DNA of 22,560 bases from Paraphysomonas bandaiensis (Eukaryota > Protista > Chrysophyceae), in the NCBI GenBank assembly GCA_965644295.1, contig CBFFRP010000626.1:1-22560 (forward strand), given 5' to 3'. Position 1 is the stretch's first letter; each line of letters begins with the position of its first letter. The notes beneath the pieces were generated by a model. The model searched no databases. It was not told the DNA's origin and saw only the letters and a program-made list of their open reading frames with translations. A program made the position numbers and the translations under genes. This document shows positions 1 through 22,560 of the stretch, one piece after another.

Positions 1-1756
1 GCTCCTGCGATCTTCTGGTTTTTGTCGGTATCATTTGCCTTGTCTCGCGCCTATGTTTCCTCCTGTGAGCCTTGCCTTGTGCGCAGCCATCACAAAGGCC
101 TTCTGGTAGCTGTGGCGAGCTCAGGTCGGATTTTGAAATAGTGATTCCTTTCACAAGATTCAACTTTAGTGCTTTTTGAATTAAGCCAATGGATGCGTGG
201 GTCAACCTTCGATGTGCCAGGGAGATCGAGGAACCGCTTGATGTAGATGCCAAGTTGCACTGGTCTTGGATGTAACCTAAATCGGATAATTTGATCTCGT
301 ATAGACCGTTTTGTTTCCTGGCTGTGGTTAACAAAATTCCATCGTGGTATACGCGTGCCTCGTTTGGTCCGAATATAATATTGCAGTTGGCGTCTGTTGT
401 CAACTGGCTGATAGAAATTAAAGTCTTTGACGCGTCTGGAACTAGCCTGCACTTGCTAATCAGTCCAAGCTTGCCGTATCCCAATGCCTGCATTTCTGAT
501 CCTGATTTGGCGGTGTAAATTGTGGTTTGATCGTAAGTGAATTCGGAGAGTAAGCTTCGTGCTGCTGTAATTGATATTGTGCAGCCAGAGTCTAGAATGC
601 CAAATTCCTGCTTCTCGTGTTCCGTATGTAGGACGTGGTTGTCTGTGATCATCCCAGAGAATGCACTGTAGTCATTGTCATCGTTTGGCCCCTCATCGTC
701 ATAGTCTTCCAGTCTTAAGTTCGAATCCCGATGACTGTTTCTTGGGTATTTTGATGATGTGTTCTTGGAGTGATGCCCTTTCCCTCTTTTGTCGTCGTTT
801 CGTTTGTTTGTAGACTTCTGCATCTGTTGTATGTGTTCCCACGAGTGCTTGCACTCTGCTGCAATGTGGTTGGATCCATTGCATCTGAAGCACTTAACTT
901 CGCGCGAGGCTCTTGTGACTTTGCTGGGCTTGTTGAATTTCTTCTGTTTTCGCTGCCCGTTGTTGTGCTTCTGCTTCTTCGGTAGACGGGGGTTAAACGG
1001 CTGTTTGCCTGTTGAGCTGTAGTTTGCGCTGTCCCGTTTGGTTTCCGTATTTTGTGATAGTAGGGAGCCTACAGTGGAATGCTCGAATGCTCTCAATCTT
1101 CTTATCAGCGTTTTATAATCATCAATTGGGTTCATTTGGAGGTTGATTGCCAGGTCCTTATAGGTCTGGTTCTCATTTGAGACCATCCCTTGTCGTATTC
1201 TTGAAATAAGGTCTTGTTCAGAGACTTTGTGGCCATGTGTAGCGAGCTTTAATCGCAATTTTTCGACTTCGTCCAGGAATTGATTGATTGTTTGAGCTTG
1301 CTTGATTTTGATTGATTGCAGTTGGCCAATGAGGTCGGTTATCGTATCATTTGAGGTCTTGTCTTTGAAATGCTTTTCGATCTCTGACCATGCCCTTTTT
1401 CCATCTCCTTCAGGGACTGTTTCGATAATACCCTCTGCTTCCTCGTTTTGGCCAATCACCGCGCTGGATAGAAGTGACCATAGGTAATTGTTGCCCTCCT
1501 CGAAATACTGCATATTTTCGTCGTAGGCGTTTTTCCTGTATAGGTAGTCCTCTTCTGTTTCTTCCTCTTGACGTATAGGCTCCTCTGGCGCATCGTTTCT
1601 TAGGATGTATACTATCTTAGGCTTACGAAAGAACCAGGCTCTACTTTTCTTCTGCCATTTTGAGAAGTTCTTGGCGTCGAAGGGTGGCATGGAATCCTTC
1701 CTCTTGTCCGATGAGTCGGAGTCGGAGTTATCGTAACTGTTAGTCTTAGAACTCAT
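1..1756 (-). CDS. Copia Gag-Pol polyprotein, N-terminal ~585 aa (partial; missing from the ORF track because it has no stop in the window)
   Basis: Manual translation from ATG 1756: MSSKTNSYD...MPPFDAKNFSKWQKK...GDGKRAWSEIEKHF (gag), zinc knuckle CFRCNGSNHIAAEC, protease ILDSGCT, integrase Zn motif AHRRLTH...CDGC; no stop down to base 1. Confidence 0.9.
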   Translation of the reverse strand, partial: MSSKTNSYDNSDSDSSDKRKDSMPPFDAKNFSKWQKKSRAWFFRKPKIVYILRNDAPEEPIRQEEETEEDYLYRKNAYDENMQYFEEGNNYLWSLLSSAVIGQNEEAEGIIETVPEGDGKRAWSEIEKHFKDKTSNDTITDLIGQLQSIKIKQAQTINQFLDEVEKLRLKLATHGHKVSEQDLISRIRQGMVSNENQTYKDLAINLQMNPIDDYKTLIRRLRAFEHSTVGSLLSQNTETKRDSANYSSTGKQPFNPRLPKKQKHNNGQRKQKKFNKPSKVTRASREVKCFRCNGSNHIAAECKHSWEHIQQMQKSTNKRNDDKRGKGHHSKNTSSKYPRNSHRDSNLRLEDYDDEGPNDDNDYSAFSGMITDNHVLHTEHEKQEFGILDSGCTISITAARSLLSEFTYDQTTIYTAKSGSEMQALGYGKLGLISKCRLVPDASKTLISISQLTTDANCNIIFGPNEARVYHDGILLTTARKQNGLYEIKLSDLGYIQDQCNLASTSSGSSISLAHRRLTHASIGLIQKALKLNLVKGITISKSDLSSPQLPEGLCDGCAQGKAHRRKHRRETRQMIPTKTRRSQE

Positions 1757-2374: not shown

Positions 2375-5300
2375 CTACTTGCGCCTTCTTTTATCCCTTG
2401 GTCCCTCATTAATCACTTCAGTGGAACTCTTAACTTTCTCTCCAAGATTTCTCTTTCTCTGCTCCATATATGATAAACCAACCAATGACTTTGTATAAAT
2501 ATCTGCTGCTTGTTGCGATGTATGCACATGCACTAACTTAATCGTATTGAACTGATTGGGATCCACGTGCTCTCTCACCATGTGATACTTAATCTCAATG
2601 TGCTTCGACTTCTTGTGAAACACTGGGTTTTCGGCCAAATCCTGGGCACTCTGACTGTCGATGAAGAATGGTGTGGGTTTGATGAGCCTCAACTTAATCT
2701 CACCCGTCACCCCCCGAACCCATAGCACTTCTTGGAGACCCGAGTAAATACACTGATACTCAGACTGCATGCTTGACGTTGCCACTGTCGTCTGCAGTTT
2801 GGACTGCCAGACTATAGGCCCTCCCGCTGCAAACCCAACGTACCCCGACGTGGACTTCCTGGAGAGCTGATCTCCCGCCCAATCCGCGTCAGTAAACATA
2901 TGGAAGTCGAACCGTCTACTCCCATATTGAATCCCTTTGTCAATAGAACCACGAATATATTGCCATACATGTGTTAATAGCTTGCATACTTCAATATTCA
3001 CCTTATTACTGAACCGAGACAGTACTCCCACTGCATAGGCTATATCCGGCCTCGTGTTCATCGATAGATATAGTAATGCACCTATCAGCGGCCGATATGG
3101 GAAGTTATCTACTATAAGCTGTTCCTCCTCGGTATGCTCATGCCGCGCCCCTTTTGCCACTAAATCCATTGCTTCCGCCGGTAGAGGACTCTTCCGTACC
3201 TTTCGCGGTGACCCAAGATACTTTTCAAACTTTTCTAAGATCTTAGCCGCATATACTGATTGGTCAAGACGAATATACTCTGGCGTTCTTGTGACTCGAA
3301 CATTGAGAAAATGTTCCATCTCGCCCATATCCTTCATATCAAACCGGGCACACAGTTGAGCTTTAATATCCTTCACTATGTTGACATCACGACCTAACAC
3401 TAGGATATCATCCACATATATCGTTAATAATATCAATTCATCGCCCTTATACTGATAATACAAACACGGGTCTAATACACATGGTTTAAAATGCATAGAT
3501 CGTATGAATTTATCCAATGTTTTCCACCACGACCGCGGGGAACTCCGAAGCCCGTATAACGACTTCTTCAGCTTAAAGCAGTACCCCTCAGGCAGCTGAA
3601 AGTCCGGAGTTGCCTTCATATATACATCCCCCTCTATATCTGCATATAGAAATGCGTTAGACACATCCAGTTGATGAATTACCATGTTCATCACGAAAGC
3701 TATGGCGATTAACAGTCGCACTGTTACCCCCTTAACAACGGGTGCGAAATGGTTCGCCCAACCACTCGACTGCTGTCCACAACCGATCGCTACAAGACGA
3801 GCCTTATATCGGCGGACCTCTCCCTCCTTATCGTACTTCTTTCCATAGACGTACTTGGAGTGCAGTGGGACGACTCCGTCCGGTATACGAGTCACCTCCA
3901 TGGTATCTCGCTTCGCCAAACCCTCTCGCTCTACACGGCGAGCTCGTCTCCACTCCCTGTGCTCGGCACTCTCCAAGGACTCACGATGTGTCTGAGGCAC
4001 TGTCGACTCTTCCGCTGACATCCACACTGAGTCTGCCTCCTGTAAAAGGTCACTCACATCACTCTCATCACTCAAATGATGGATTTGTCCTAACACCGAC
4101 ACATTCGTTACCGTCCTTGGAGTTCTTGCGCGTTTGCCGTGCGGATGATTCTCGGCAGGGGCCCCTTCCCCCGAAGGTAATGCTGAGTCAGCCTGGGGCT
4201 GCACCTGCCCACTTTCCGACTGCTGTGGCACCACTCCGCTGATACCGCCGTCACGGTTGTCAGTAACTCTGGCCCTAACCACCCTCTGCGCAAGATCCTC
4301 TGTCATCTTCTTGATGTCAGCAATATGAATAGGAGTTTTATCCTCCACTTGAACCTGGTTACCAGTAACCAACGACCGGTATCCCACAATAAGTCCCTTC
4401 CTTATCACCACTCTGTTAGTCTTGTATAGCAGACCACCATCCTCATGGTGCTTTCCGATAAGATACTCAAACTCACCCGGTTGACGAGCCTCGGGATCTA
4501 TAGCCACTTGAGCCTCCTCCAGCTCTCTATAATAATCCTGAGACCTCTCAGGTACCGATTCATCAAATAATACATGTACAGAGTGTACTACGGTGTCCCC
4601 CACTAGCACCTTGTATCCTTTTCGATCAGCTGGATACCCTATGAAATAACCTGTCATTGCTTTGTCCTCCCAGTCCTTCCTCCTGTCGGCCTTGGGTGTT
4701 AGCACATATGCTTTGCACCCCCATTTCCGTAGCCACGATAGGCTGGGAACGCTCCCCCCTGGGACACACTCATATGGAGACATCCATCCTTGCCACGTCC
4801 GAGTTGGCATTCGTCGCACAATGTAACATGCAGTTTGATAAGCATCAAACCAGAACGACTTTGGAAGTCCAGATGCCGTCAACATCGTCAGTGTCATCTC
4901 CCCAATTGTTCGGAATTTCCTCTCAGACACCGCGTTGAGCTCTGGCGTGTCTCGTGTTGTATGTGACACCCGAGTCCCATATCGCTGCAACAGATACTCT
5001 CTTATCTGCTGACTAATAAGTTCGGATCCTCCATCGGCATGATACTCCACTATACGGTTCCACCCCTCGTACTTCACTAAGTGGACCTCGCACAAGTGTC
5101 GTAGACATTTGAACACCTCCTCTCCGCTTCGAGTCCTCAGTCCATATTCCCATATCATCTTTGTTGCTAAGTCCGTAAATAGGAGCACGTACTTATACCC
5201 TTGTCTGGATTCACAATTGAGATAGACGGAGATGTCCGCTGTTACTCTTTCCAGGAACCTGACTGCGCTTAGCTCTTCGTTGTCCCGTGATTTGAACGAA

Positions 5301-6973
5301 TGCCTGGTTATCTTCGCCTTGGCACACCATTTACACAGGGGTTTCTTGCAACTCTTCTCCTTTGCCTTCGAAAGGTGATGTCGTTGTAGTCCTGATCCTC
5401 TGAATAACATGTGTCGGTGAGCTTCTAATAACTTCGATTTCGAGACATGTCCAGTACGCTCATGTAAGCGATCCAACGCATCTTGTCCTGTATTATCCGA
5501 CAAATTTACCTCCTCCATCTGATTGCACATAGACACATTTGGCAGATTTAACACCTCCATCAAGTCCACATACGGCATCCCTCCATGCTCATCGTACTCT
5601 CCAGTCAACACCTCGTTTCCAGAGTCCAATTCCACGATTTTAGGCTTTCGAAGCAGTTGTAATCCGTATCCCATTGATCTCAGCATCCCTCCTGACACAA
5701 TGTTCTTCACCGCTTCTTCACTAACTCTGATGTCTCTCCATTCCCCGAATGTACCAGTTCCCTGTGTCTCCAATTGAGAACCCTTTCTAGTTAGTTGGAT
5801 TGCCCCAAACTCAGGAGTAAATGACTCCAGTGCAATTTTATCCTTTACTATAAACAGTCTTTTACTTGCACAACTGTCCAGATATACACGAGGTTCTTCC
5901 GACGTATCCACCGATAGCAAAACCTCTTCTCCAAACATATTCGCTTCATCATCCGACGACTCTCCGTCGTTGACGTATTTCTTCCATTCTGTCTCGAATT
6001 TCCTGTTCGATTTTCGAGGATTCTCATTATCCGGGTTTTTTATGTTCTTCCGTTTTTTCGACTTGCACTGTCGGGCTTTATGACTAAAATCTCCACAGAT
6101 ATGACAACCAGTATAATCCTTTGATCCTGGCTGCTGCACACTCTTCGAAGCCTTTTCCTTTGTCTTCCCTTTTCTTTTGAACTTATCCATTTTTCTTTGT
6201 CGTTCCTTAGCATAACAATTCGCTGCTACATGTCCCTTCTTCCGACAAAATGAACAAACCACTGGCTCCTTCGACGCCGTAAAATTGATCTCTTCAGATT
6301 TGTCTCCCTTTAGTTTCTTCAGCTGCGTCATAGCCTCGTCATACTCTTCACAAGCCTCTTTCACCGAATCAAATGTAGTTGTTGCTTTAGGCATCATCGC
6401 TACCGACATCCATAAATCATGTAATTCCTCTATCTGCAGCGCTGCTTTTATCTTTGCTAATTTACTTGCCTCTGTCTGCGGTTGTCCCAATTTTATGAGC
6501 TTCTGGATTATACCGTTCAGTCGATCTACCCCAACAGACACCTTTTCCCCCGGCCTTATTTTGAACGAATGGTATTCTGCCGTAGTCTTCTCCAATACAG
6601 TCCCAATCTCGCCTCTGAACCTATCAACCAGTGTCTGAAGGAGCTCACTGGATAACACCTCCTTAGCAGGATCATCAGCAGGTAAAATTGCCTTCCCCTC
6701 CAAATATTGATTGGCTACCTCCAACACATCAGGGTCATGCTCGCAAGCCTCCCAAATAGTACTAACACAGGTATCATTACGCTCTCTCCATGACTCTAAA
6801 TTCCTTCCTCCGGCTGGCGGGTCCTCCAAGCCAAGATGGTTTCGGTTTTTCTTCATTAGATGCATCTTGATTTTTCTCGCTGAATAGTCTGCTTGGTTCT
6901 TGTCAAACCGTAGCTTCTTGTCATCTTCCCCATCCCTACAACTAGCATTCGCTACCATAACAGAAGTTGACAT
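2375..6973 (-). CDS. Copia Gag-Pol polyprotein (Gag with two CCHC knuckles, protease, integrase, RT, RNase H)
   Basis: CSFCRKKGHVAANC and CHICGDFSHKARQC; YLDSCAS; LHERTGH...CKWC; integrase TADI/ADGGSE/AVSER; RT QLDVSNAFL, KSLYGLR, YVDD; RNase H TDADWAGD, KHIEIKYH. Start is either 6973 (inside the LTR) or 6958. Confidence 0.97.
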   Translation of the reverse strand: MSTSVMVANASCRDGEDDKKLRFDKNQADYSARKIKMHLMKKNRNHLGLEDPPAGGRNLESWRERNDTCVSTIWEACEHDPDVLEVANQYLEGKAILPADDPAKEVLSSELLQTLVDRFRGEIGTVLEKTTAEYHSFKIRPGEKVSVGVDRLNGIIQKLIKLGQPQTEASKLAKIKAALQIEELHDLWMSVAMMPKATTTFDSVKEACEEYDEAMTQLKKLKGDKSEEINFTASKEPVVCSFCRKKGHVAANCYAKERQRKMDKFKRKGKTKEKASKSVQQPGSKDYTGCHICGDFSHKARQCKSKKRKNIKNPDNENPRKSNRKFETEWKKYVNDGESSDDEANMFGEEVLLSVDTSEEPRVYLDSCASKRLFIVKDKIALESFTPEFGAIQLTRKGSQLETQGTGTFGEWRDIRVSEEAVKNIVSGGMLRSMGYGLQLLRKPKIVELDSGNEVLTGEYDEHGGMPYVDLMEVLNLPNVSMCNQMEEVNLSDNTGQDALDRLHERTGHVSKSKLLEAHRHMLFRGSGLQRHHLSKAKEKSCKKPLCKWCAKAKITRHSFKSRDNEELSAVRFLERVTADISVYLNCESRQGYKYVLLFTDLATKMIWEYGLRTRSGEEVFKCLRHLCEVHLVKYEGWNRIVEYHADGGSELISQQIREYLLQRYGTRVSHTTRDTPELNAVSERKFRTIGEMTLTMLTASGLPKSFWFDAYQTACYIVRRMPTRTWQGWMSPYECVPGGSVPSLSWLRKWGCKAYVLTPKADRRKDWEDKAMTGYFIGYPADRKGYKVLVGDTVVHSVHVLFDESVPERSQDYYRELEEAQVAIDPEARQPGEFEYLIGKHHEDGGLLYKTNRVVIRKGLIVGYRSLVTGNQVQVEDKTPIHIADIKKMTEDLAQRVVRARVTDNRDGGISGVVPQQSESGQVQPQADSALPSGEGAPAENHPHGKRARTPRTVTNVSVLGQIHHLSDESDVSDLLQEADSVWMSAEESTVPQTHRESLESAEHREWRRARRVEREGLAKRDTMEVTRIPDGVVPLHSKYVYGKKYDKEGEVRRYKARLVAIGCGQQSSGWANHFAPVVKGVTVRLLIAIAFVMNMVIHQLDVSNAFLYADIEGDVYMKATPDFQLPEGYCFKLKKSLYGLRSSPRSWWKTLDKFIRSMHFKPCVLDPCLYYQYKGDELILLTIYVDDILVLGRDVNIVKDIKAQLCARFDMKDMGEMEHFLNVRVTRTPEYIRLDQSVYAAKILEKFEKYLGSPRKVRKSPLPAEAMDLVAKGARHEHTEEEQLIVDNFPYRPLIGALLYLSMNTRPDIAYAVGVLSRFSNKVNIEVCKLLTHVWQYIRGSIDKGIQYGSRRFDFHMFTDADWAGDQLSRKSTSGYVGFAAGGPIVWQSKLQTTVATSSMQSEYQCIYSGLQEVLWVRGVTGEIKLRLIKPTPFFIDSQSAQDLAENPVFHKKSKHIEIKYHMVREHVDPNQFNTIKLVHVHTSQQAADIYTKSLVGLSYMEQRKRNLGEKVKSSTEVINEGPRDKRRRK
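6946..6957 (-). other. Primer-binding site of Copia 2
   Basis: TGGTAGCGAATG immediately after the 5' LTR; primer tRNA not identified. Confidence 0.65.
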
Positions 6974-7672: not shown

Positions 7673-8788
7673 CTAGACGGCATCAGCAGGATACAGATCT
7701 TCCATGGGAATGTGAAAGCGCGGGCCCCAATAGCTCTCGCTGTGAGTAGCGCCCTCATCCACGTAACGAAACACGTCCACATTTTCCTGGAATCCGTCAG
7801 CAACCATCTGCTCATAGATGTCCAGAGTGTATGCTGTGCACTCCTTCTCTCCCAGAGATCCAGTGCCAGAATCCATATATATGCGCGGTAGAGGGGCGGG
7901 CGGAACAGAGGCGGGAATCACATTTTTTTGGAAGTCATTGTAATCCCACCAGAATGAGCTGGACATACATCCGGCTTTGCCATACACCTGCGGGCGGGTC
8001 CACACGGCGTAGCAACTGATAAGTCCGCCCAGAGAGGAGCCTAGAATACCTAGGTTATCCCTAGTAACTTCAACACGAAACTCAGATTGTACAAGTGGAA
8101 TAAGGGTGGACTCGATCCAGTCTAGGTAGAGGTCACCCTTGCCTCCAGCGCCCTCAGAAGGATCGTAAACGTAAGTGTACTCGTTAATCCGGTCAGGGGT
8201 GTTGTATGCACCAACGATCAGAACTTCGTCCGTCTGGCCACCAATAATAGTCTCATCGAGGGAGTCCTGGCACATCCAGGCGTTTCCCATATATGCTGTA
8301 CTTCTGTCGAACAGGTTCTGTCCGTCGTGCATGATTAGAATATTGGTGTGCACCTTGAGAGTATTTTCCAGATAACTCGGAGGCAGATAAAAAATAACAT
8401 CTCGAAAATTGTTTAACTCCTTTGAGTACACATTTTTAATAGTTGTTAATGTGCCTTGATATGTGTAGAACCAAGGGTACAAGGTGGACGAGAGAGGGGA
8501 CGAGGTCATGCTGACGTGGTGGTTGGACCCCAACATCCACACCTTATCATCAACCAATACCTTCACCTCAACAGATTCAACGCTATCAGAACACGATATA
8601 GTCACAGTCCACGAGTTGTTCTGGCTCACATCCATCTTAATACCTCTGTCCCAGTTAAGCCCACAGCTGTCTCCCCTCAAATACAGTGAAGAGACAGAGT
8701 GAGGATACATCGCCTTAATCTCAATCTGACTGCATTCAGACAAACACAGCAGCGAAAGCGCCGAAAAAAGAAAGAATATTTTGACCAT
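7673..8788 (-). CDS. Secreted alpha/beta-hydrolase (putative esterase, PF00756/COG2819-like) with a small N-terminal carbohydrate-binding-like domain
   Basis: 371 aa, no introns; hydrophobic signal peptide; YLPPSY, MHDGQNLF, nucleophile elbow GSSLGG, SSSFWW, YMDSG, catalytic-His motif HSESYW. Confidence 0.88.
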   Translation of the reverse strand: MVKIFFLFSALSLLCLSECSQIEIKAMYPHSVSSLYLRGDSCGLNWDRGIKMDVSQNNSWTVTISCSDSVESVEVKVLVDDKVWMLGSNHHVSMTSSPLSSTLYPWFYTYQGTLTTIKNVYSKELNNFRDVIFYLPPSYLENTLKVHTNILIMHDGQNLFDRSTAYMGNAWMCQDSLDETIIGGQTDEVLIVGAYNTPDRINEYTYVYDPSEGAGGKGDLYLDWIESTLIPLVQSEFRVEVTRDNLGILGSSLGGLISCYAVWTRPQVYGKAGCMSSSFWWDYNDFQKNVIPASVPPAPLPRIYMDSGTGSLGEKECTAYTLDIYEQMVADGFQENVDVFRYVDEGATHSESYWGPRFHIPMEDLYPADAV

Positions 8789-11294: not shown

Positions 11295-13500
11295 TTGGCC
11301 CCTCTGGACGTAGGAATCAGTGATATAGGGGAAGAGTGGTCGTACCCAGCGGAGGAACAGCTGCTTTCGCTGGGAGAAGATCTTTCAAATTTCTCAAATG
11401 GGTCGACAAGGGACCGAGAGGATATGAAAGAAATTCGCAACGATCAGTTAGACTCCATTGACTCTGATTATCTAGACTCTGAGGGTGAGTCTCCTACGAT
11501 TCCAGAAAAGGTTTATGGGTCACCGGACCTACAAGAAAAGATTCGTGAGGTCCTGTGGGATACAGGGATATCTTTCGATTAGGGATTCGAAAAGGAAAGC
11601 CCACGAAGTTGGAACTTTTAGTTAGAGAAGTCCGGAACCCAGCTGAGGCATGGCTGATGCCGGCAATAAATTGCCTCGTAGGAGGTTGGATAGGAGTCGT
11701 CAGCGCGAACTCCAACGTGGAGTGGAAAAGTTAGAGCGGTTGAGAGCGATCCAACCTAGCTCGACCACTCATTATAGTCATTCTTTTGTAGTTCCGTAGC
11801 CAAACAATAAGTGGCGATTAGTGTTGGATTATAAGAATCTCAACAAGGTTAGATCTGGCCAATTCCGAACATTAGGGATATGATTTATCGGATTGGTGCC
11901 AGTGGGCGAGGAGTCCCGTAATTGGGTCGCCTTTATTACTCAAAACGGGGTGTACGAGTGGCTCCGGCTCCCCATGGGTTTGAAAGGTGTCCCGTCCTTC
12001 TTCCAGCGGCAAATGCAAAGTAGTGCTAGCGGGTTTAGTGTATGAGATTTGTGAGATATATCTCGGTGAATGTGTTATATTTGCTAGCTCGGAAGAGGAG
12101 CTGATTAAGGATTATCAGCGGGTTTGGAGATATTTAGGAAGTTTGGCCTAGTACCCAGAAGGGGTTCATGGGTGTGGCAAATTTGGTGAGAGATTGCGTA
12201 CGCGAATATGCGCTGATTGCGAAACCATTGCATGCAATGTTGGGGAATTATACTAAGTCGCAGGCTAGACTTAAGGTATTGCAGTGGACGGAGGAGTCCA
12301 GTGTTGCCTTTGATGTGCTAAGGGAGCGCATTCATGAGTGTCCCTTATTATTTTTTATGGATGATGTTTCCCCCATCTTCCTATATACTGACGCGTCAAT
12401 AATTGGTATAGGGGCACACTTGGTGCAAGTCGTGGAGGGTCACGAGCGCACAATTGGGATGATTAGTAAGGCGTTCGACTCAACGTTAGCTAAGTGGCAC
12501 ACCTGCGAGCAGGAAGGTTTTGCCATCTTTTATGCACTAAATAAGTGGGAATACTTGTTGAGGGATCGACGTTTTACGGTTCGAACCGATCACGATAATT
12601 TACGCCAACTCAAGCAGGAGTATGGCCACATTAAGCGAGTGCAGCGCCTGTTTATGTGTTTTCAGTCGTTTGATATCGTGTTCGAACACCTTCCAGGGGA
12701 AATGAATGTGGTGGCTGATGCTCTTAGTCGAGTTTGTGGGGTGGACGCATCCGACAAGATCGATGACAATCTGTGCTCTTCTCTCGAGCGGTGCCTGGAG
12801 GAAGAGTCACATACTGAGGATCAGCGCATCTCTAATCACCTCTGGGAGGCGATTAAGGCTTGTCACAATAGTGTAGTAGGCCACCATGGGGTGGAACGTA
12901 CAATGGGAAAGTTGCGAAGGAGCAACAATGATTGGAAGAACATGCGTCAGCATGTTATACGTTTTATTAAGTGTTGTGTGTGTTGTCAACAGATGTCAAC
13001 CATTAAGCTGGATGTGGGTTCGGCTTTTTCCTCTATCTAAGTATTCCATGGGTGAGTGCATCTATAGGGATTATATTGAGGGTTTAATTCCCGGTGAGAA
13101 TGGGTATACTAGTATTCTGGTGATGATAGATATATTATTCGGGAGGTAAACTTTTATTAGGAGTGGAGCACTCCTTTACAGTAGAGTACTCAAAGGAAGA
13201 GAATGGTATGGTTGAGAGGGAGAATAAGGAAATTCTCCGTCATCTAAGGAATATTATTTTCGAGAAAGTGGTCTGATGTTCTGCCAATGGTGCAGCATAT
13301 TTAGAATGCGGCAATTCATGGGTCGACAGGAGTGGCCCCGGCACAGTTCTAGTGTATGGAGATGCCATAAACCTAGATGCAGGTTTTATTGTGGATAGGA
13401 AGAATTTGTCTCCAAGGGAGGAGAAGGATCTGTCCGAGTGGGTTGACAGTACGAGGAACAGATGCGTTGTTGAAGTATTTGAAGGCTCACTCTAACTATG
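11295..13500 (+). pseudogene. Decayed Gypsy pol (RT remnant, RNase H, integrase remnant, possible chromodomain tail)
   Basis: VVP*PNNKWRLVLDYKNLNK, WPIPNI, AFIT..GVYEWLRLPMGLK, YLGE instead of YLDD (~12059), RNase H YTDASIIGIGAHL/EQEGFAI/TDHDNL/NVVADALSR, integrase HNSVVGHHG...CVCCQ; stops, frameshifts and deletions. Confidence 0.9.
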
Positions 13501-14290: not shown

Positions 14291-15674
14291 ATGAGTGGGG
14301 AGTCTTCAGTTGAGTGTTCATCTGATGATGAGTGGAATATTATGGAGACGAATACTTTGGTTTGGAAGGAGGATATGGTAAACGACTACAGGGTCATAGG
14401 GGAGCTGGGCAAAGGTACCGCTGTGTATCGTGTACGTGTCTCTCGCTGACAGGGTGTGTTTGCGACAGGGAGTTTCGGTATTGTTAAGAAGTGTCAGCGC
14501 GAAGTAGGCCCAGAGCCGTTTCGAATATTTGCCTTGAAGGTAATATACGTATACATCTGTCTGTTGGAGCATACATGATGATATTCTTCAAGTTTCTCAG
14601 TAAAAAAAAGTTGAGGAAGTGTGTTGATACAGTTCTCGATGATACTGGGTTCCCATGCCGAATTACAGGAATTGACAAGCTCAACAATGAAATAAATCTG
14701 ATGCGAAGGCTCTTTCATAGAAATGTATCTATATTGTTTGAGGTTGGTCGTGAAGGACTGGGCTAGTTGTTGCATGTAAACTTGTTCAACAGGTGATAGA
14801 TGATTCTGATGAAGATAGTGTTGTGCTAGTTACGGAATATATGGCTGGAGGTGCCGTTATGAACTACGTGCCGTCTCGTGGGGTCTATCAATACTCTGCA
14901 TTTTCTGCTGCAATATTGAAGGGTCAAGGAAAGGTTTTCGGTGATACTGGTATGTTTGAAGTATATAGTATGCTTCCTGGTTTTAACCTAGGGTATAGTT
15001 TTGGAAGCGTCGGACCTAGAATTCCCCAGACCTATGACAAATGAGGAATGCGCGTCGTTGTTTTGTGATTTGTTAGAGGTATGGCGTCTGGGCTGTGACA
15101 TTGAAGTCTTGTCATACATGTACTTTAGGGTGTGAGTTTTTTACACTCGAAAGGTATATGCCACCGCGATCTGAAGCCCGACAACCTTCTGGTGCACGAA
15201 TCGGGCTCTCTTCGTATATCTGACTTTGGATGTGCTGTGCAACTGGACCTGCAGTCGAATCCTAGAGGTCTAGTGTCTAATACCGTCGGTACTCTTGCAT
15301 TTTGGCCCCCTGAGGCGCTGTTGGATCCCACTGCTGATGATGATGTAATGCTGGGGCCGGATCCGAAGGAGTATTCCGCTTTTGACGCAGATGCGTGGGC
15401 TGTAGGGATGGTGCTGCACTGCTTTCTTTATGGCAAGCTCGTGTTTCCTTTAGTTGGAAGGAGCCACGTGGACATAATTCAGAGCATTCTTGCATTCAAC
15501 TCGAGTGATATAGATAGTGCTACTTCAGAATGTGACTATAACCAGAGGGATGAAGCTGCTAATTATGTGTGGAAAAATATGCTCATCCAAGACCGAGATG
15601 TCAGGTGGAATATCACGAATGCTATGCATTCTGAGTGGATCTGTAAAGAACTTCAGCGTAGAAAATCGTCGTAG
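14291..15674 (+). CDS. Ser/Thr protein kinase, CAMKK-like; 6 exons (14291-14414, 14469-14539, 14593-14742, 14793-14949, 14999-15078, 15129-15674)
   Basis: Manual splicing of five 49-54-nt GT-AG introns gives one frame: VNDYRVIGELGKGSFG, FALK, NEINLMRRLFHRNV, LVTEYMAGG, HRDLKPDN, DFG, GTLAFWPPE, DAWAVG. Subfamily judged from motifs only. Confidence 0.88.
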
Positions 15675-16483
15675 GTGACAATGCGTTCGTTATATATACT
15701 TTTTTGTGTGGAATGCTAAGTGATGACGTTTTGAGTCTCTGCGCACAATGTAGCCTAATTCTTGGCACTGTTGATAGCCTAAATTCAGACTGGACTGTTT
15801 GTCGCTATTATTTCGAGTGTAATATAGTAAGAAATATTGTTGAGTTCAACTGTATGATAACCTATGTATTGAGTAATAGAAGGGAGTTAATTTTGTACAA
15901 TTCTATACCTGTAAATCTCATAGTAGAATAGATGACAGATCATATTAAGTAATCAGAGGATGTATGAATATGATGTGAGTTGTTCAACAATATAATCTCT
16001 AAATACAATAATTACACAATTATTGTGGATTATTAGTTTCTAGAATTACAGAAGTACACAATTTATTGATGTAAAACGCCGCTGACAATTTAACTTAAAA
16101 ATCTTGTATCTTGTGTCAAGTTTGTAACGAATAAACGCTCAATCAACTTAATTTTTATAGCTTTTGTCACTCCCAGTCATTGTCAAGGTCAAATAAAGTG
16201 AAAATGTATTGGATTGCAATATATTGCAATTATTTATTTTTGCTTGCTACAATATATATAATATTATTTTAGCAAATTTGACCTCGCATTGTATTGAGAA
16301 ATATATATTGCAACATATTTATTAATTATTATTGGCCTTTAGAATAGTATTATTATTACGTTTTTTCTGGCAATATATATAGTATAATATACTGTATTGT
16401 TATCGTCCTTTGGTCAATGCTATCGTTGCAATTAATTAATAGTAGTGATCACTATTTCCCAGGGCTGCGTTATATAATATAAA

Positions 16484-16705
16484 TTGACTTCATTAGGCGG
16501 CCCAATATCCCCGGTTACCCTTAAGGTGGGCCCTGTCCCGGATGCTTGAATTCATCAAGGCCCAAAGACGTCTACACAAGTGATACTTATTAGTGTCCCT
16601 TGTGTAACACACAAGCATTCGGCTATGATTGAGCAGAACAATATCTGCTGACTATGTATGTACTTATCCCCCAGAACACCACGAAAAGGTGTGAGTCCAA
16701 CTTTG
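16484..16705 (+). ncRNA. Unidentified structured element, copy A (candidate ncRNA)
   Basis: Homologous to 17659-17889, with invariant blocks, indels in loops and linkers, and pairing-preserving substitutions; strand inferred from G-U pairs. Confidence 0.5.
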
Positions 16706-17658
16706 TTGAAAGAATTCGTAAGAAAGATACTTGTGATCAACATGTTGTTGTGGGTTTGGTCTAATTCCAAGTGAAATAATATCATGTCTAGTTGTGCAAT
16801 TACGGAACGACAATAAATTGTCTCAATCATGTGTGTCAATAGAGTTACAGAGCGAATTTGAATATCAGCTTTTGATGTACACGGCGTTAAAACCCATCAC
16901 AAGACACTCTACTAGTGTCGTGCGTCATCTGCTGGTGGACAATGTAACTTTCTTATAGCGTTGCTTTCGAAAAAAGGCAGTCGTGAAAATAATGCTAAAT
17001 TGAATAATTTATTTAAACAAAAAATAATGATAAAAAAATGTTTTTGCTCAATGTGGAAGATGATGATGAAAGTGGGTCCAGTTCAGAATGTCAACAAAAC
17101 ACAGAATTTTATTGATTACAACAACGGAAGCGGAAGCGAGCACGTTTTAACCAGCACGCTTGATTCCACAGTATGAAGCACGTGCAAGTTTATTCTCAGT
17201 AGAGCTCATCAGTGAGAATGTTATGGCTAATATTCAAGAGCTACTACTTTTCATGCATGAATCACGCCTCAGTATAGTTTTATACGAAAGTAGTGTATAG
17301 TATCAATTAATTGAGACGGCAGATAATAATTACAATTATAACTAACTATAAACTACAAACTGTGCCAATAAATTGTTACGCAGCCGTTCTATTTCCATAG
17401 CCTAGCCCTGTTGACAAAAACCTTGCAACCATTTTGTATAGTGATATGCGTATGCATTGTACATTGCACACACTATGGTACCACGTTGGCTTTTTATATT
17501 TTATCATATTAAAAGTCTTTTATTTTTAGCAATAGGCGTTAAAAACCTGCACCAACTTAGTAGCTAGATGAATGCTAGACAAACTATAGTTAAACCTCTA
17601 CCTGTAACTAATCAGTACACACTTTTTTTATCCTACTATTTAACGCTACGGAAGTTGC

Positions 17659-17889
17659 TTGACTTCATTAGGCGGCCCAATATCCCCGGTTCCCTTCCGG
17701 TGGGCTCTATTTATTCGTCAGGGCCCAAAGATGTCTACAAAAGTGACACTTATTGGTGTCCTTTGTATTCGGCTATGCGTGGGCAGAAGAATATCTGCTG
17801 ACTATGTTTGTGGCTCACGTTAGTTTCCCAGAGAGAATCTCTCCGGTAATTATCCCCCAGAACACCACGAAGGTGCGAGTCCGACTTTG
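17659..17889 (+). ncRNA. Unidentified structured element, copy B (candidate ncRNA)
   Basis: As copy A; carries an extra inserted hairpin (CCAGAGAG-AAT-CTCTCCGG). Confidence 0.5.
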
Positions 17890-18396
17890 CAGAGGGATAT
17901 TTTATCAAGCGGCTGCTCTACCAGAATGTGCATACCATCGTCATTAGTTTACTGTCGATATGATTGCTATTTTACAGCTCTTCCACCTGCGATAAAGGCA
18001 TGCTACATGCTAATAAGTAGAAAGGTATGTTAATATACAATATACAATACGGCCGTGTGAGTATTATTTAATATATATATTTCTTTCGCTTTATGTGAAA
18101 ATAAATAATATATGATGCAATTTTATGTATAGATTATAGATTATAGTTAATCTTAAATACATTATATCACATCTCTCCCTTTACATATCCTAATTCCTAA
18201 TCTTCCTCAAAGTAGCAATACTAGTATAATACTGCTTAATTCACTTACAATATTTATTATTTAATGCCTTACTTAGGCTTGAGATCTCAACTACTCTACC
18301 CACATTGGATGCAAGATCAGGGGAAAATAAAATACCTAATCATGCAAGTCACACACACCAAATCTTTCGCATTCAACAACATTACATCTCGCAACA

Positions 18397-19569
18397 TTAA
18401 ATACTGGCCTCATTATTATCCACTTTCGAGAGAGATTGCGCGTCGGGTATGTCGTTATGCTCAGTAGCGTTGTCCTCTGTACTATTGAGATCAGGAGGAA
18501 GGGCAATCTCAACATCATCTTCTCGTGCAATATCGTCTTCCGCCACAACAGCACTTGGCTCTCGCGGACTTTTCTCTGGCGTTTTATAAGGCTTTTTAGC
18601 AGCCATTTCGACTCCGTTTCCGGAGGCCGAGCGAGAACGAGGCTGTTTGGCCACAGAGTAAAAGGCTTTATCTTCACTCTGGCCGCTGTTTCTAAACACA
18701 ACATTGCTTCTATGAAGGAAGTCCGCAAACAGAACCTGCGACAGCGAGATCTGTCTGCACACGATGCGTCATAACGCTGAGCCCGATTAGCAAACCCAAT
18801 TCCCCAGCATTAGAAAGCACGGGGTATATACGCTGTCCAAAGCACTGACCCACGGCATGTAGCAGACTGAACGGGAGCATGTATCTCCAATAATAGTTGC
18901 GATTGCGTACACCGAGAGAAAAAATTCTTTGCATACCTAAACACAACACAGTTATTTACAATTTAACAAAACTAGAATCCTTGCCTTTGCATAACAATTG
19001 CAATCAGAATTGCGAATGCCGATAATAGCAATGACGGCAATAATGCCAGCCACAGATGTACAGACTTCGTACTTTCACCAAGCGTCTCATATCCAGCTAT
19101 TCCAGCATCTTTATCCTCATCATGTAAAAGGTCAAAATTCACTAAAATATTGACGGCAAATATCCCAATGGCATAAATTCGGACACACCATAATGAAATA
19201 CTAGCAATGTATCCCGACATCAACTCCCCTTGTTCGAATGGTATACATAAAAAGTGAGCCGTTCTAGACTGATGCAACCTGAAGGGTATTTCCAAAAACG
19301 GCTAAAATAAGCCCTGGTAATATTAAAGCTTGTGCGACGAAAACGAACTTAGCAAGGACGGAACGCTCGCTTATTCCTGTCGCCAATGGCTAAAACACAA
19401 TTTTCAAAAGCACATCAATAAACTCAGCAAGGGCAGTGCATGCACTGGAAGCATACTCAGCTTCTGTAGATACAAGAATTGCAATGCACAGAGCGTAGCA
19501 CTAATAGCAGCAAAAGCTATAAACAAAAACAAATTCATATATCTCGATATCGTGACCGACAAACGTCAT
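18397..19569 (-). CDS. Multi-pass membrane protein of unknown function with an acidic low-complexity tail; frame broken by about six single-base insertions (sequence error or pseudogene)
   Basis: Fragments join as MTFVGHDIE/MNLFLFIAFAAISATLC...CF/ENCVLAIGDR/ISERSVLAKFVFVAQALILPGLILAVF/EIPFRLHQ...IVMQR-intron-YAKNF/SLGV...AVAGS/FADFLHRSN...NEASI*; probable GC-AG intron at 18937-18984. Confidence 0.65.
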
Positions 19570-20043: not shown

Positions 20044-22560
20044 ATGGAGGAGAAGTCCCTTGTTTCTGTGAGGGAGCTCCGAGATAACCTGAAGGAGGCT
20101 CTTCGTAAATCAGGCACGCTAAATACAGTCAAGGCGCACATCAGGAAGGAGTTCATCGAGAGTCTGTCTCGTCCAGGGACTAGATCAGGGACAGGGGCGA
20201 GGGAACAGACCACACCGCATTGAGAGAGTGCTTCCGAGATAACATACTATGTAGCGCCATATATCATCATCTGCGTAAGAGCGGTCTCACCCATACAGTG
20301 TCAGTGTTAGTGGCGGAGTATGGGCTCGAGAAGAACGGAATCATATCGGAGGCAGATATTGCAGAATCTGCGAAAATACCATCCAGCATAAGTAAGCGTT
20401 CCAGTAGTGGCGTAGAGAACGATACGCCTTCTGTTTTCGGAGGCCTTGTTTGACTGGCATTCGAAGTCTTTTGGAGCACGGGTACAAGCGGAGACTTCCA
20501 CACAAACAGACATTACCGGTCCTGGAATACGAGAAATTCTAGACAATCAAATTAAAGATTTACACCTTTCTTTTCTTTCAAGGAGGGAGACGGAGCGGTT
20601 GATGCCAACGAAGACCGTGGAGGAGCGAATGATCTCCTTTCAACGAGACTGTGAAGAGCGGATGAAGAGGGAGCTGGACGCTCAGGTCGGTAAAAGTTAC
20701 AGAGTGTATGTGATTTCATGGTACAGTTTGCCTACAGATAAACTACATGAGGACAACTGAAATCAATGCTATTCGCAATGAAGAATCAAGAAAGATGCGT
20801 TTGGAGGTAGAATCTCTACGCAAAGAGATGCGAAAGCTCATACCAGTCCCGTCTACAAGCCCACTCGGACAGGGAAGCCGAATCTGCTCGAATCGCAGCT
20901 GAGAGGGAGCGCAAGTTGAATCAGATGGAATTTGATTCGCGACAGCAGATGCAGATTGAAATTGAGGAGTTGCGGAGTCGCGAGGAAAGCATTAGGCGAG
21001 AAGCTGAGTTGGAACTGCAAGGCACCAGGATGCTGGAAACTAGGCTCAAGGAAATGAAAGTTGTTTTGGAATCCCGTGAACGTGAAGTTGGTCGGCGTGA
21101 GCGTGAGCTGGAGGTAAAGATGGCTGAGATGACAGCCATCGCGCGTGACGAAGCGAGATCCACTGTAGAAAGTGAACTGGAAAGTATTTTGAGGGAGAAG
21201 GCGACGCTTATGATTGAAAGGAAACGGTTCGAGGATGAGAGAGAAGCAGATGCTGCCTTACGTCTTGCCATATCGGATATGCAGCAAGCGTTATAGTGAT
21301 ATGGAATCTTCTCTACTCGACAAAGACGAGGAGATATCTGGATTGAGGAGGACTATTGCGAAGATGCAAGCGAGTTTGGCAGCAGAGAGCGCTGATGCCG
21401 CGGAGGTACTACCAGTTTTGTATTACTGGCTTCAACTGACTACTATATATGCAGCTTGTTGAGAAATATGGGTGCGTCAATGACGATTCGCTAAAAGATG
21501 GCAAGCTTGATGGTGTGATTACTCTTATTCGCAAGAATGTAGAGCTAGAGTCTATTATCAACCAATTAAAAAGAGATGTGCAGTCCATGTCTGAACACGT
21601 GAATGCGGAGAAACTGCGAAGCGCAGAACTGGTGGCGAATATCACGAATTTAGAAGAGGTTATGCACTCTTCTATTATGTTTCCAAGAAGTGAGCTCTAT
21701 TTCAGGAGCTTGGAAAGGCGAAGAGTTTGGCCGTCGCCGCAGAAGAGGTGAAAGCAAACACAATGAGGTAAACTAGGTCAGTTTGCTGCTATATACAGAT
21801 ATGGTCAGTAATGAAGTCAATGTAATAGAGAAACTGAAGCGCGTCGTTATCACCACGAGGAAGGCGAATTCTGTCTTAAAGCAGGATCGTAAAGATTTGG
21901 AACAGCTAGTTAGCGAACAGCGCACTGCTATCGATAAGTTGCGTAAAAATACCTCAAGACAGGAGTACAAGAACTCATACAACATGCCGATGCAAAGTGA
22001 GTCGCCTGTATACAAAGCATCCTATTGTTTCTAATACTCTAGTTTTATAGCTACTGTTGTACCTAGTTGGCTGCCTGTTGACCCCAACTCGATAGGTTGC
22101 TCCCATACTGGAGGACCAAAAGGCAATTCTATGTACAAGTTATATGATAGTGTGGTCACAAGTATTTTTGCAGATTTCGTGTATTCCAGTCGAATGGAGA
22201 ACGAGCTTTCTCTAAGTTCGAATCAACGCGATGATCAAAATATTGTGTCCAGGGCACACGACCTATCACGCATATTTGAATCTGATCGAAGCAAACTCGC
22301 CAAAACTGTGGCGAGTTATGAATACCCAGATGTCAACAGAGAACAGTCGACTATTTCAAGTCCTATTGGATAAAGAAAATGTGTCCCGTAGAAATCGCGA
22401 AGAAGAAGACGAAAGGCTGAGAAAGGAGAGGCTCCGGAGGCTTGAGGAGGGAAAGAAGAAGAATGAGAGAAGAAGAGCGGTTCCGAAGGCTGCGAAGAGG
22501 AAGAGAGGGAAAGAGAGAAGATAGATTACGTAGACTCCGTGAAACAGAGGAGAGGGAGAA
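20044..22560 (+). CDS. OFD1: OFD1-like centriole/basal-body protein (TOF + LisH N-terminus, long coiled coils); multi-exon, partial, several single-base frameshifts
   Basis: ELRDNLKEALRKSGTLNTVKAHIRKEFIESL (TON1/OFD1/FOP motif), LisH-like ILCSAIYHHLRKSGLTHTVSVLVAEYG, STQT, then an E/R-rich coiled coil; GT-AG introns 20686-20737, 21406-21454, 21659-21705 and more downstream. Confidence 0.72.

Follow-up and report, generated by a model that had tools for sequence, protein, structure and literature searches.

Two related stretches of a 22,560-nt piece of Paraphysomonas bandaiensis DNA, which was analysed over its full length and is called the window here, are very probably copies, decayed independently of each other, of a single SINE-like retroposon that is abundant, non-coding and ~481 nt long. 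On structural modelling we further propose, tentatively and at slightly less than an even chance, that the first ~88 nt of this element form an active HDV-like ribozyme of the L1Tc/Pr77 design, which would stand at the head of a promoter-less stramenopile retroposon with a LINE-like tail.

The two copies and their family

The stretches at 16484-16705 (copy A) and 17659-17889 (copy B) had been picked out in a sequence-only reading of the window, which took them for two diverged copies of a structured element of ~225 nt. The shared blocks are real: the two stretches align with long identical blocks, and their identity is 85.8% over the 197 aligned positions at which both have a base. When copy A was used as a query against the window's own assembly (62.5 Mb in 669 contigs), 2,047 first-look candidates were returned, and all 40 of the candidates that were scored matched. 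A 25-nt motif at one end of the element occurs 1,378 times at three or fewer mismatches, and for a 26-nt motif at the opposite end the genome-wide count is 1,232; the reversed control gave 0 occurrences in both cases. In most copies the similarity extends ~215 nt further on one side than the flagged stretch, and full-length copies are 93-95% identical over ~487 nt. The proposed borders of ~225 nt therefore have to be given up, as the element is ~481 nt long and the flagged part is only one half of it.

Copy B as a whole occupies 17509-17896 on the minus strand and retains 388 nt of the ~481-nt consensus by nhmmer and alignment. With a 481-position nhmmer profile built from 10 full-length copies, consensus 4-149 was matched at 17512-17661 and consensus 215-481 at 17656-17896. 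A 69-nt internal deletion lies between two TGCTTG direct repeats, and smaller deletions have removed 15, 13 and 2 nt. The insertion is flanked by a perfect 11-bp target-site duplication (TSD), ATATTTTATCA, at 17496-17506 and 17897-17907; the left TSD is followed by two extra bases, TA (17507-17508), before the element begins, and the right one abuts the ...CAGAGGG end with no extra base, which is the pattern of the family survey described below. Copy B is thus a complete insertion with internal deletions. Copy A (16484-16712, minus strand) is a fragment that corresponds to plus-sense consensus 218-481, that is, to the first ~264 nt in the sense that we assign to the element (nhmmer match, consensus 218-478 at 16484-16709). 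Within it ~36 nt are deleted, the LINE-like tail is absent and no TSD is visible. The 82 nt upstream of copy A are unique and unrelated to the family, the missing half of the copy is not present in the window, and no repeat abuts its break.

These structures also account for the way in which the pair had been delimited. The flanks were described as unrelated, which holds for A against B only, as the 150 nt upstream of the flagged part of B (17509-17661) and the last 7 nt are the same element. The common left border of A and B is a coincidence, because the breakpoint of A and the deletion endpoint of B fall at the same place. The extra hairpin ascribed to B is family consensus, and it is A that carries its ~36-nt deletion there. 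Relative to the family consensus, three differences are common to A and B and 14 are private to each; at the level of sequence, the blocks common to the two copies are simply unmutated consensus.

Identity to the consensus is 96-99% in most copies and spans 84.9-99% across the aligned set. The family is recently active and very abundant, and A and B, both at 92.4% identity to the consensus, are older than most of its members. The variant TTGACTTCATTAGGCGGCCCAATAT, which comprises the three substitutions common to A and B, is found together elsewhere only in a duplicate contig, and with one mismatch at C287:69371; its distribution points to a small old subfamily. The duplicate contig is C142, whose positions 25639-28860 are identical or nearly so to 14984-18205 of the window's contig, over more than 3 kb that include both copies, and which looks like a haplotig or an assembly duplicate.

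The element has no ORF of 100 aa or more. Within it, minus-sense consensus 181-240 and 241-300 form a diverged tandem duplication of ~60 nt (score 43, against 13.7 +/- 5.7 for shuffles), which lies at roughly 16484-16565 within copy A and which accounts for the repeated occurrence of CCCGGATGC as well as for copies in which a unit is added or absent. A search of a metagenome collection with two conserved 22-24-mers as queries yielded no match and no related DNA, and in open-access text we found no description of such an element in stramenopiles.

Insertion hallmarks

TSDs of 11-16 bp were present in 15 of the 19 full-length copies whose loci were fetched. Their variable length is a mark of target-primed reverse transcription and places the element among the retroposons. 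In 13 of the 15 copies, the TSD adjoins the TTGAGGG end (CCCTCAAC in the minus sense) without an extra base, and the other end (...GACTTTCAA) is followed by 0-11 mostly TA-rich bases before the TSD, which there mostly starts with TAT. A MITE or another derivative of a DNA transposon would likewise be short, non-coding, abundant and often clustered, and retroposon copies are indeed often clustered or nested; against this origin, which we regard as hardly credible, the termini share no inverted repeat longer than a 6-nt GAAAGTC/GACTTTG match, the length of the TSD is not fixed, one end bears a variable tail, and the element is linked to a LINE.

No head derived from tRNA, 7SL or 5S RNA with a polymerase III promoter was detected in tRNA scans or in Rfam searches of copies and halves: three whole copies gave no match in either type of scan, and each half of the element, searched separately against Rfam at E up to 10, gave none. 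The runs of T and A in the element also speak against polymerase III. Since a polymerase III-type head is lacking, the element falls outside the classical definition of a SINE; it works like a LINE-dependent non-autonomous retroposon.

Pairing and fold of the plus strand

The sequence-only reading had proposed that A and B belong to a clustered family of structured non-coding RNA genes, or to a new ribozyme family, maintained on the plus strand by selection on the fold. Part of what it described stands. The local hairpins that it named are present, with 92.9% of cells paired in a 33-copy alignment, and no catalogued RNA family was matched: Rfam 15, at gathering and at permissive thresholds on both strands of the window, returned nothing relevant, only chance-level matches at E >= 0.8, and a tRNA scan of the window found none. 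In particular, no Rfam covariance model for snRNA, snoRNA, SRP, RNase P/MRP, riboswitch or group I was matched, and the comparison with group I introns, which had been offered loosely, is without support. Copy A also folds somewhat better than its shuffles (z = -2.67); the corresponding values are -1.35 for copy B and -1.22 for a consensus-like copy, so that the fold is not unusually stable.

The differences between A and B do not, however, keep pairing in the manner claimed. None of the 38 named pairs shows changes on both sides in the 33 copies, the observed covariation score is reached by 460 of 500 shuffles, and in the A/B examples that had been cited only one side of the pair has changed, with a wobble or a mismatch as the result. 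The consensus fold found by RNAalifold is weak (-8.04 kcal/mol), and its covariation term, at +0.43, is unfavourable. In place of compensatory change, the pattern is that of the neutral decay of a hairpin-rich repeat, and the apparent covariation is what two independent copies of such a repeat, each decayed by ~7%, look like. There are at least 1,378 copies, with TSDs, truncations and internal deletions; no upstream promoter is common to A and B, as the upstream DNA of A is unique and that of B is the rest of the element; and the border that had defined the unit is the accident of breakpoint and deletion endpoint noted above. A family of RNA genes or a fold under selection on the plus strand is thus very improbable. 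What was found (many copies of a transposable element, some of them fragments, with no significant covariation) is the outcome that the sequence-only reading had itself named as contrary to its proposal. The DNA is indeed repeated, hairpin-rich and linked to a transposon; the further suggestion of a transposon-associated guide scaffold found no support.

Sense strand and the link to a LINE

It is well supported that the RNA of the retroposon has the sense of the window's minus strand, which makes the flagged stretch the 5' half of the element itself. This assignment is favoured by the exact TTGAGGG end, the ragged and TA-rich other end, and the sense of a block shared with a LINE. The 0-11 mostly TA-rich extra bases and the TSDs, which there mostly start with TAT, agree with a 3' tail that is short and variable and is primed at the target site.

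LINEs with AP-endonuclease and reverse transcriptase (RT) domains (PF03372 and PF00078), in ORFs of up to 2,256-3,731 aa, were found in the genome; a search for LINEs with PF14529 gave no match. One of the LINE families carries a 30-nt block identical to consensus 142-171 (plus-sense numbering), which lies on the sense strand of the LINE and is antisense to the plus orientation of the element. In all four testable LINE copies, the distance from the RVT_1 match to the end of the block is 2,381 nt: in C11 the RT match lies at 18486-19370 (plus strand) and the block at 21751-21780 (minus strand), in C15 at 16141-17022 (plus) and 19403-19432 (minus), in C25 at 50484-51365 (minus) and 48074-48103 (plus), and in C28 at 53852-54733 (minus) and 51442-51471 (plus). 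The LINE in C15 lies within a split copy of the element, which sets a bound on its 3' end: it stops at most 147 nt after the block, compared with 141 nt in the element. Seven further blocks that were tested, all outside the 30-nt core, were not identical in the LINE copies, so that either the two tails have diverged while remaining co-linear or the real partner of the element is a sister LINE. On the coordinates of exact blocks, on which the link rests, it is probable that the 3' ~170 nt of the element are co-linear with the 3' end of a family of AP-endonuclease/RT LINEs, with an identical core of 30 nt in common. The reverse transcriptase of the LINE would then recognise the shared tail and copy the element in trans. 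In copy B, the LINE-like 3' tail region occupies 17509-17661 (minus strand), at the 3' end in the assigned sense, and the LINE-identical core was mostly lost through the 69-nt deletion.

The GC-rich hairpin block at consensus 142-171 has 844-877 exact copies in the genome, compared with 231-343 for neighbouring blocks of similar length; it is probably common to the LINE and to other retroposon subfamilies. At C15:15484-19923, a 5'-truncated LINE is nested antisense inside one retroposon copy, which it splits near consensus 164-171. Both ends of the element flank an RT at this locus, and C15 was considered as a parent element; this was rejected, as block mapping revealed the LINE to be nested antisense in one copy.

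The same retroposon might instead be transcribed from the plus strand, in which case TTGAAAGTC would mark an AT-rich head and TTGAGGG the end of a folded 3' tail. Many copies do retain the TTGAGGG end without the other end, copy A would fit 5' truncation, and extra junction bases also occur at the 5' junctions of LINE-type insertions. However, about as many copies retain the TTGAAAGTC end without the other, and because either end is missing about equally often among truncated copies, truncation gives no decision on the strand. In 13 of 15 copies the TTGAGGG end is precise and the opposite end, ragged and rich in T and A, resembles a 3' tail; copy A is without a TSD, and the LINE carries the 30-nt core in the opposite sense and at a fixed offset near its 3' end. 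In plus sense, moreover, a run of seven T at consensus 110-116, in the middle of the element, speaks against an RNA polymerase III transcript. We consider transcription from the plus strand unlikely, and the minus-strand sense is used below.

A candidate HDV-like ribozyme at the 5' end

HDV-like ribozymes carry a catalytic C between P4 and the 3' strand of P2. The minus-sense consensus of the retroposon starts with CCCUCAAC, and with a simple descriptor its first 88 nt thread into an HDV-like nested double pseudoknot of 25 bp that is anchored at base 1. P1 is formed by 1-6/40-45 (6 bp), P2 by 14-21/82-88 (8 bp in the threading, with one bulge), P3 by 23-25/33-35 (3 bp) and P4 by 53-60/64-71 (8 bp); P1.1 would amount to a single A-U pair at best. 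Between P4 and the 3' strand of P2 stands C76-U-A-A, in which C76 is the candidate catalytic C. Only 22 of 3,000 shuffled sequences thread at all, and none of the 3,000 reaches 25 bp. P1-P4 are paired in 94.4% of cells in 31 copies, 13 of which pass a strict descriptor. The predicted cleavage site coincides with the 5' end of the element, where the TSD abuts base 1 in 13 of 15 copies, an agreement that shows position only. No HDV-like threading was obtained at the plus-sense 5' end, where there is no partner for P1.

From this modelling, we regard a ribozyme at the head of the element as plausible, with the chances about evenly balanced. Such a ribozyme would cut exactly at base 1 and thereby free the element from longer host transcripts. 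The earlier suggestion of a ribozyme thus remains live, although in a form different from that proposed: the candidate lies on the opposite strand, takes up only the last ~88 nt of the flagged unit, belongs to a known class and is damaged in both A and B.

It could also well be, although we would not count on it, that the retroposon and its minus-strand sense are as described and that the 5' ~88 nt are no ribozyme, the exact end arising from a fixed transcription start (an internal promoter) or from other processing. Several observations agree with this. The HDV-type models of Rfam, searched on both strands and including a 116-nt search at E up to 10, gave no match. Covariation in P1-P4 amounts to one double change, which 302 of 500 shuffles equal, a test of low power among neutrally decaying copies that are 84.9-99% identical; pair-keeping and pair-breaking transitions number 16 and 11 (p = 0.44), with no excess of the former. 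P1.1 is weak, and the descriptor is non-specific, as an internal site (position 296 in the true sense) also threads with 25 bp. Positions 27-77 of the L1Tc ribozyme (L1TcRz), rebuilt from the primers printed in PMC3185411, aligned to the element with a score of 14, compared with 15.6 +/- 3.1 for shuffles, which is not significant. In L1Tc, the same 77 nt (Pr77) are described as both promoter and ribozyme (PMC3383444, PMC1874656). On the other side, the threading starts precisely at base 1 and is equalled by none of the 3,000 shuffles, C-U-A-A stands at the place of the catalytic C in HDV-like ribozymes, and the junction reads GGAAACUAA in the element and GGAAGCUAA in L1Tc, a likeness of the form GGAA-N-CUAA.

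In the window, the degenerate candidate ribozyme region of copy B lies at 17811-17896 (minus strand); the descriptor, which threads the consensus, fails on B, in which a change of A6 to U leaves P1 with 5 bp, L3 is shorter by 2 nt and the outermost P2 pair is broken. In copy A, alignment places a remnant at 16660-16712 (minus strand), in which P1, the 5' strand of P2 and P3 are retained and P4 and the 3' strand of P2 are deleted. It is therefore likely that neither copy in the window is active: A lacks P4, half of P2 and the tail, and in B both P1 and P2 are weakened and the core of the tail is deleted.

Other features of the window

Several other mobile sequences are found in the window. An intact ORF of 1,532 aa at 2375-6973 (minus strand) belongs to a copia-type LTR retrotransposon (RVT_2, integrase core and retroviral SH3-like domains), and a gypsy-type pol fragment with RNase H-like and integrase zinc-binding domains lies at 12168-13040 (plus strand). 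The only ordinary-looking host gene seen in the window is a 371-aa ORF at 7673-8788 (minus strand) with a putative esterase domain (PF00756, E 4.5e-21). A different dispersed repeat at 16184-16401, with a core of ~110 nt, gave 171 first-look candidates, and its copies are 78-90% identical; it ends 82 nt before copy A. Between A and B, at 16751-17195 and 17271-17393, lies an older dispersed repeat whose copies elsewhere are 66-77% identical, and inside it, at 17022-17117, there are weak C/D-box snoRNA-like Rfam matches that are far below threshold (E 1.2 and 2.1).

Discussion

Stringent SINE/LINE pairs, such as UnaSINE1/UnaL2, share a 3' stem-loop tail. The element resembles these pairs in that its 3' part probably runs co-linear with a LINE 3' end, with the identical core in a stem-loop, and in that it has variable-length TSDs and no poly(A). 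It differs from classical SINEs, which have a tRNA, 7SL or 5S head with a polymerase III promoter, as no such head was detected.

Among LINEs, those of the RTE type also carry an HDV-like ribozyme at the 5' end. The same has been described for the R2 LINE (PMC3774820). In R2 and RTE elements, as may be the case for the candidate here, a ribozyme at the exact 5' junction can free the element RNA from a co-transcript; both, however, are autonomous LINEs, and R2 is site-specific in rDNA, whereas the element is non-coding and dispersed. Retrozymes are non-autonomous retroelements with hammerhead ribozymes (PMC4918200) and are comparable in combining a non-autonomous retroelement with a self-cleaving motif, which in our element is a candidate only. 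The hammerheads of retrozymes lie in LTR-like or tandem repeats and their RNA is circular, whereas the element is linear and LINE-tailed; Rfam gave no hammerhead match in the window.

By analogy, the closest described design is that of the trypanosomatid NARTc/RIME/SIDER group with its Pr77/L1TcRz head. Like the element, these are short, non-coding, LINE-dependent retroposons, and their first ~77-96 nt are an HDV-like ribozyme that cuts just upstream of +1 (PMC3185411, PMC4035085), for which the modelled head of the element is a candidate counterpart. The L1Tc ribozyme has a C at +1, a 3-bp P3 and a P1.1 of one or two pairs (PMC3185411, PMC4035085). The modelled head of the element is alike in its C at +1, which is paired in P1, and in its 3-bp P3, with a P1.1 of at most one pair, and the junction between P4 and P2 bears a similar GGAA-N-CUAA motif. 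There are also clear differences. The hosts belong to different eukaryotic supergroups, and overall the sequences are not significantly similar; the head of the trypanosome retroposons is also present on their parent LINE; and the tail of the element is a short TA-rich extension, in contrast to the poly(A) of the trypanosomatid retroposons.

The main value of this analysis is a negative one, namely that the pair formed by A and B should not be filed as a new RNA family. At the same time, the family to which they belong is of note for research on mobile elements and ribozymes, as it is abundant, has a LINE-like tail and no polymerase III-type head, and occurs in a free-living protist. If the ribozyme reading is true, a ribozyme head that replaces a polymerase III promoter would exist far outside the trypanosomatids. 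In that case, ~1,400 recent copies could cut host transcripts wherever they lie in sense, and host mRNAs could be affected.
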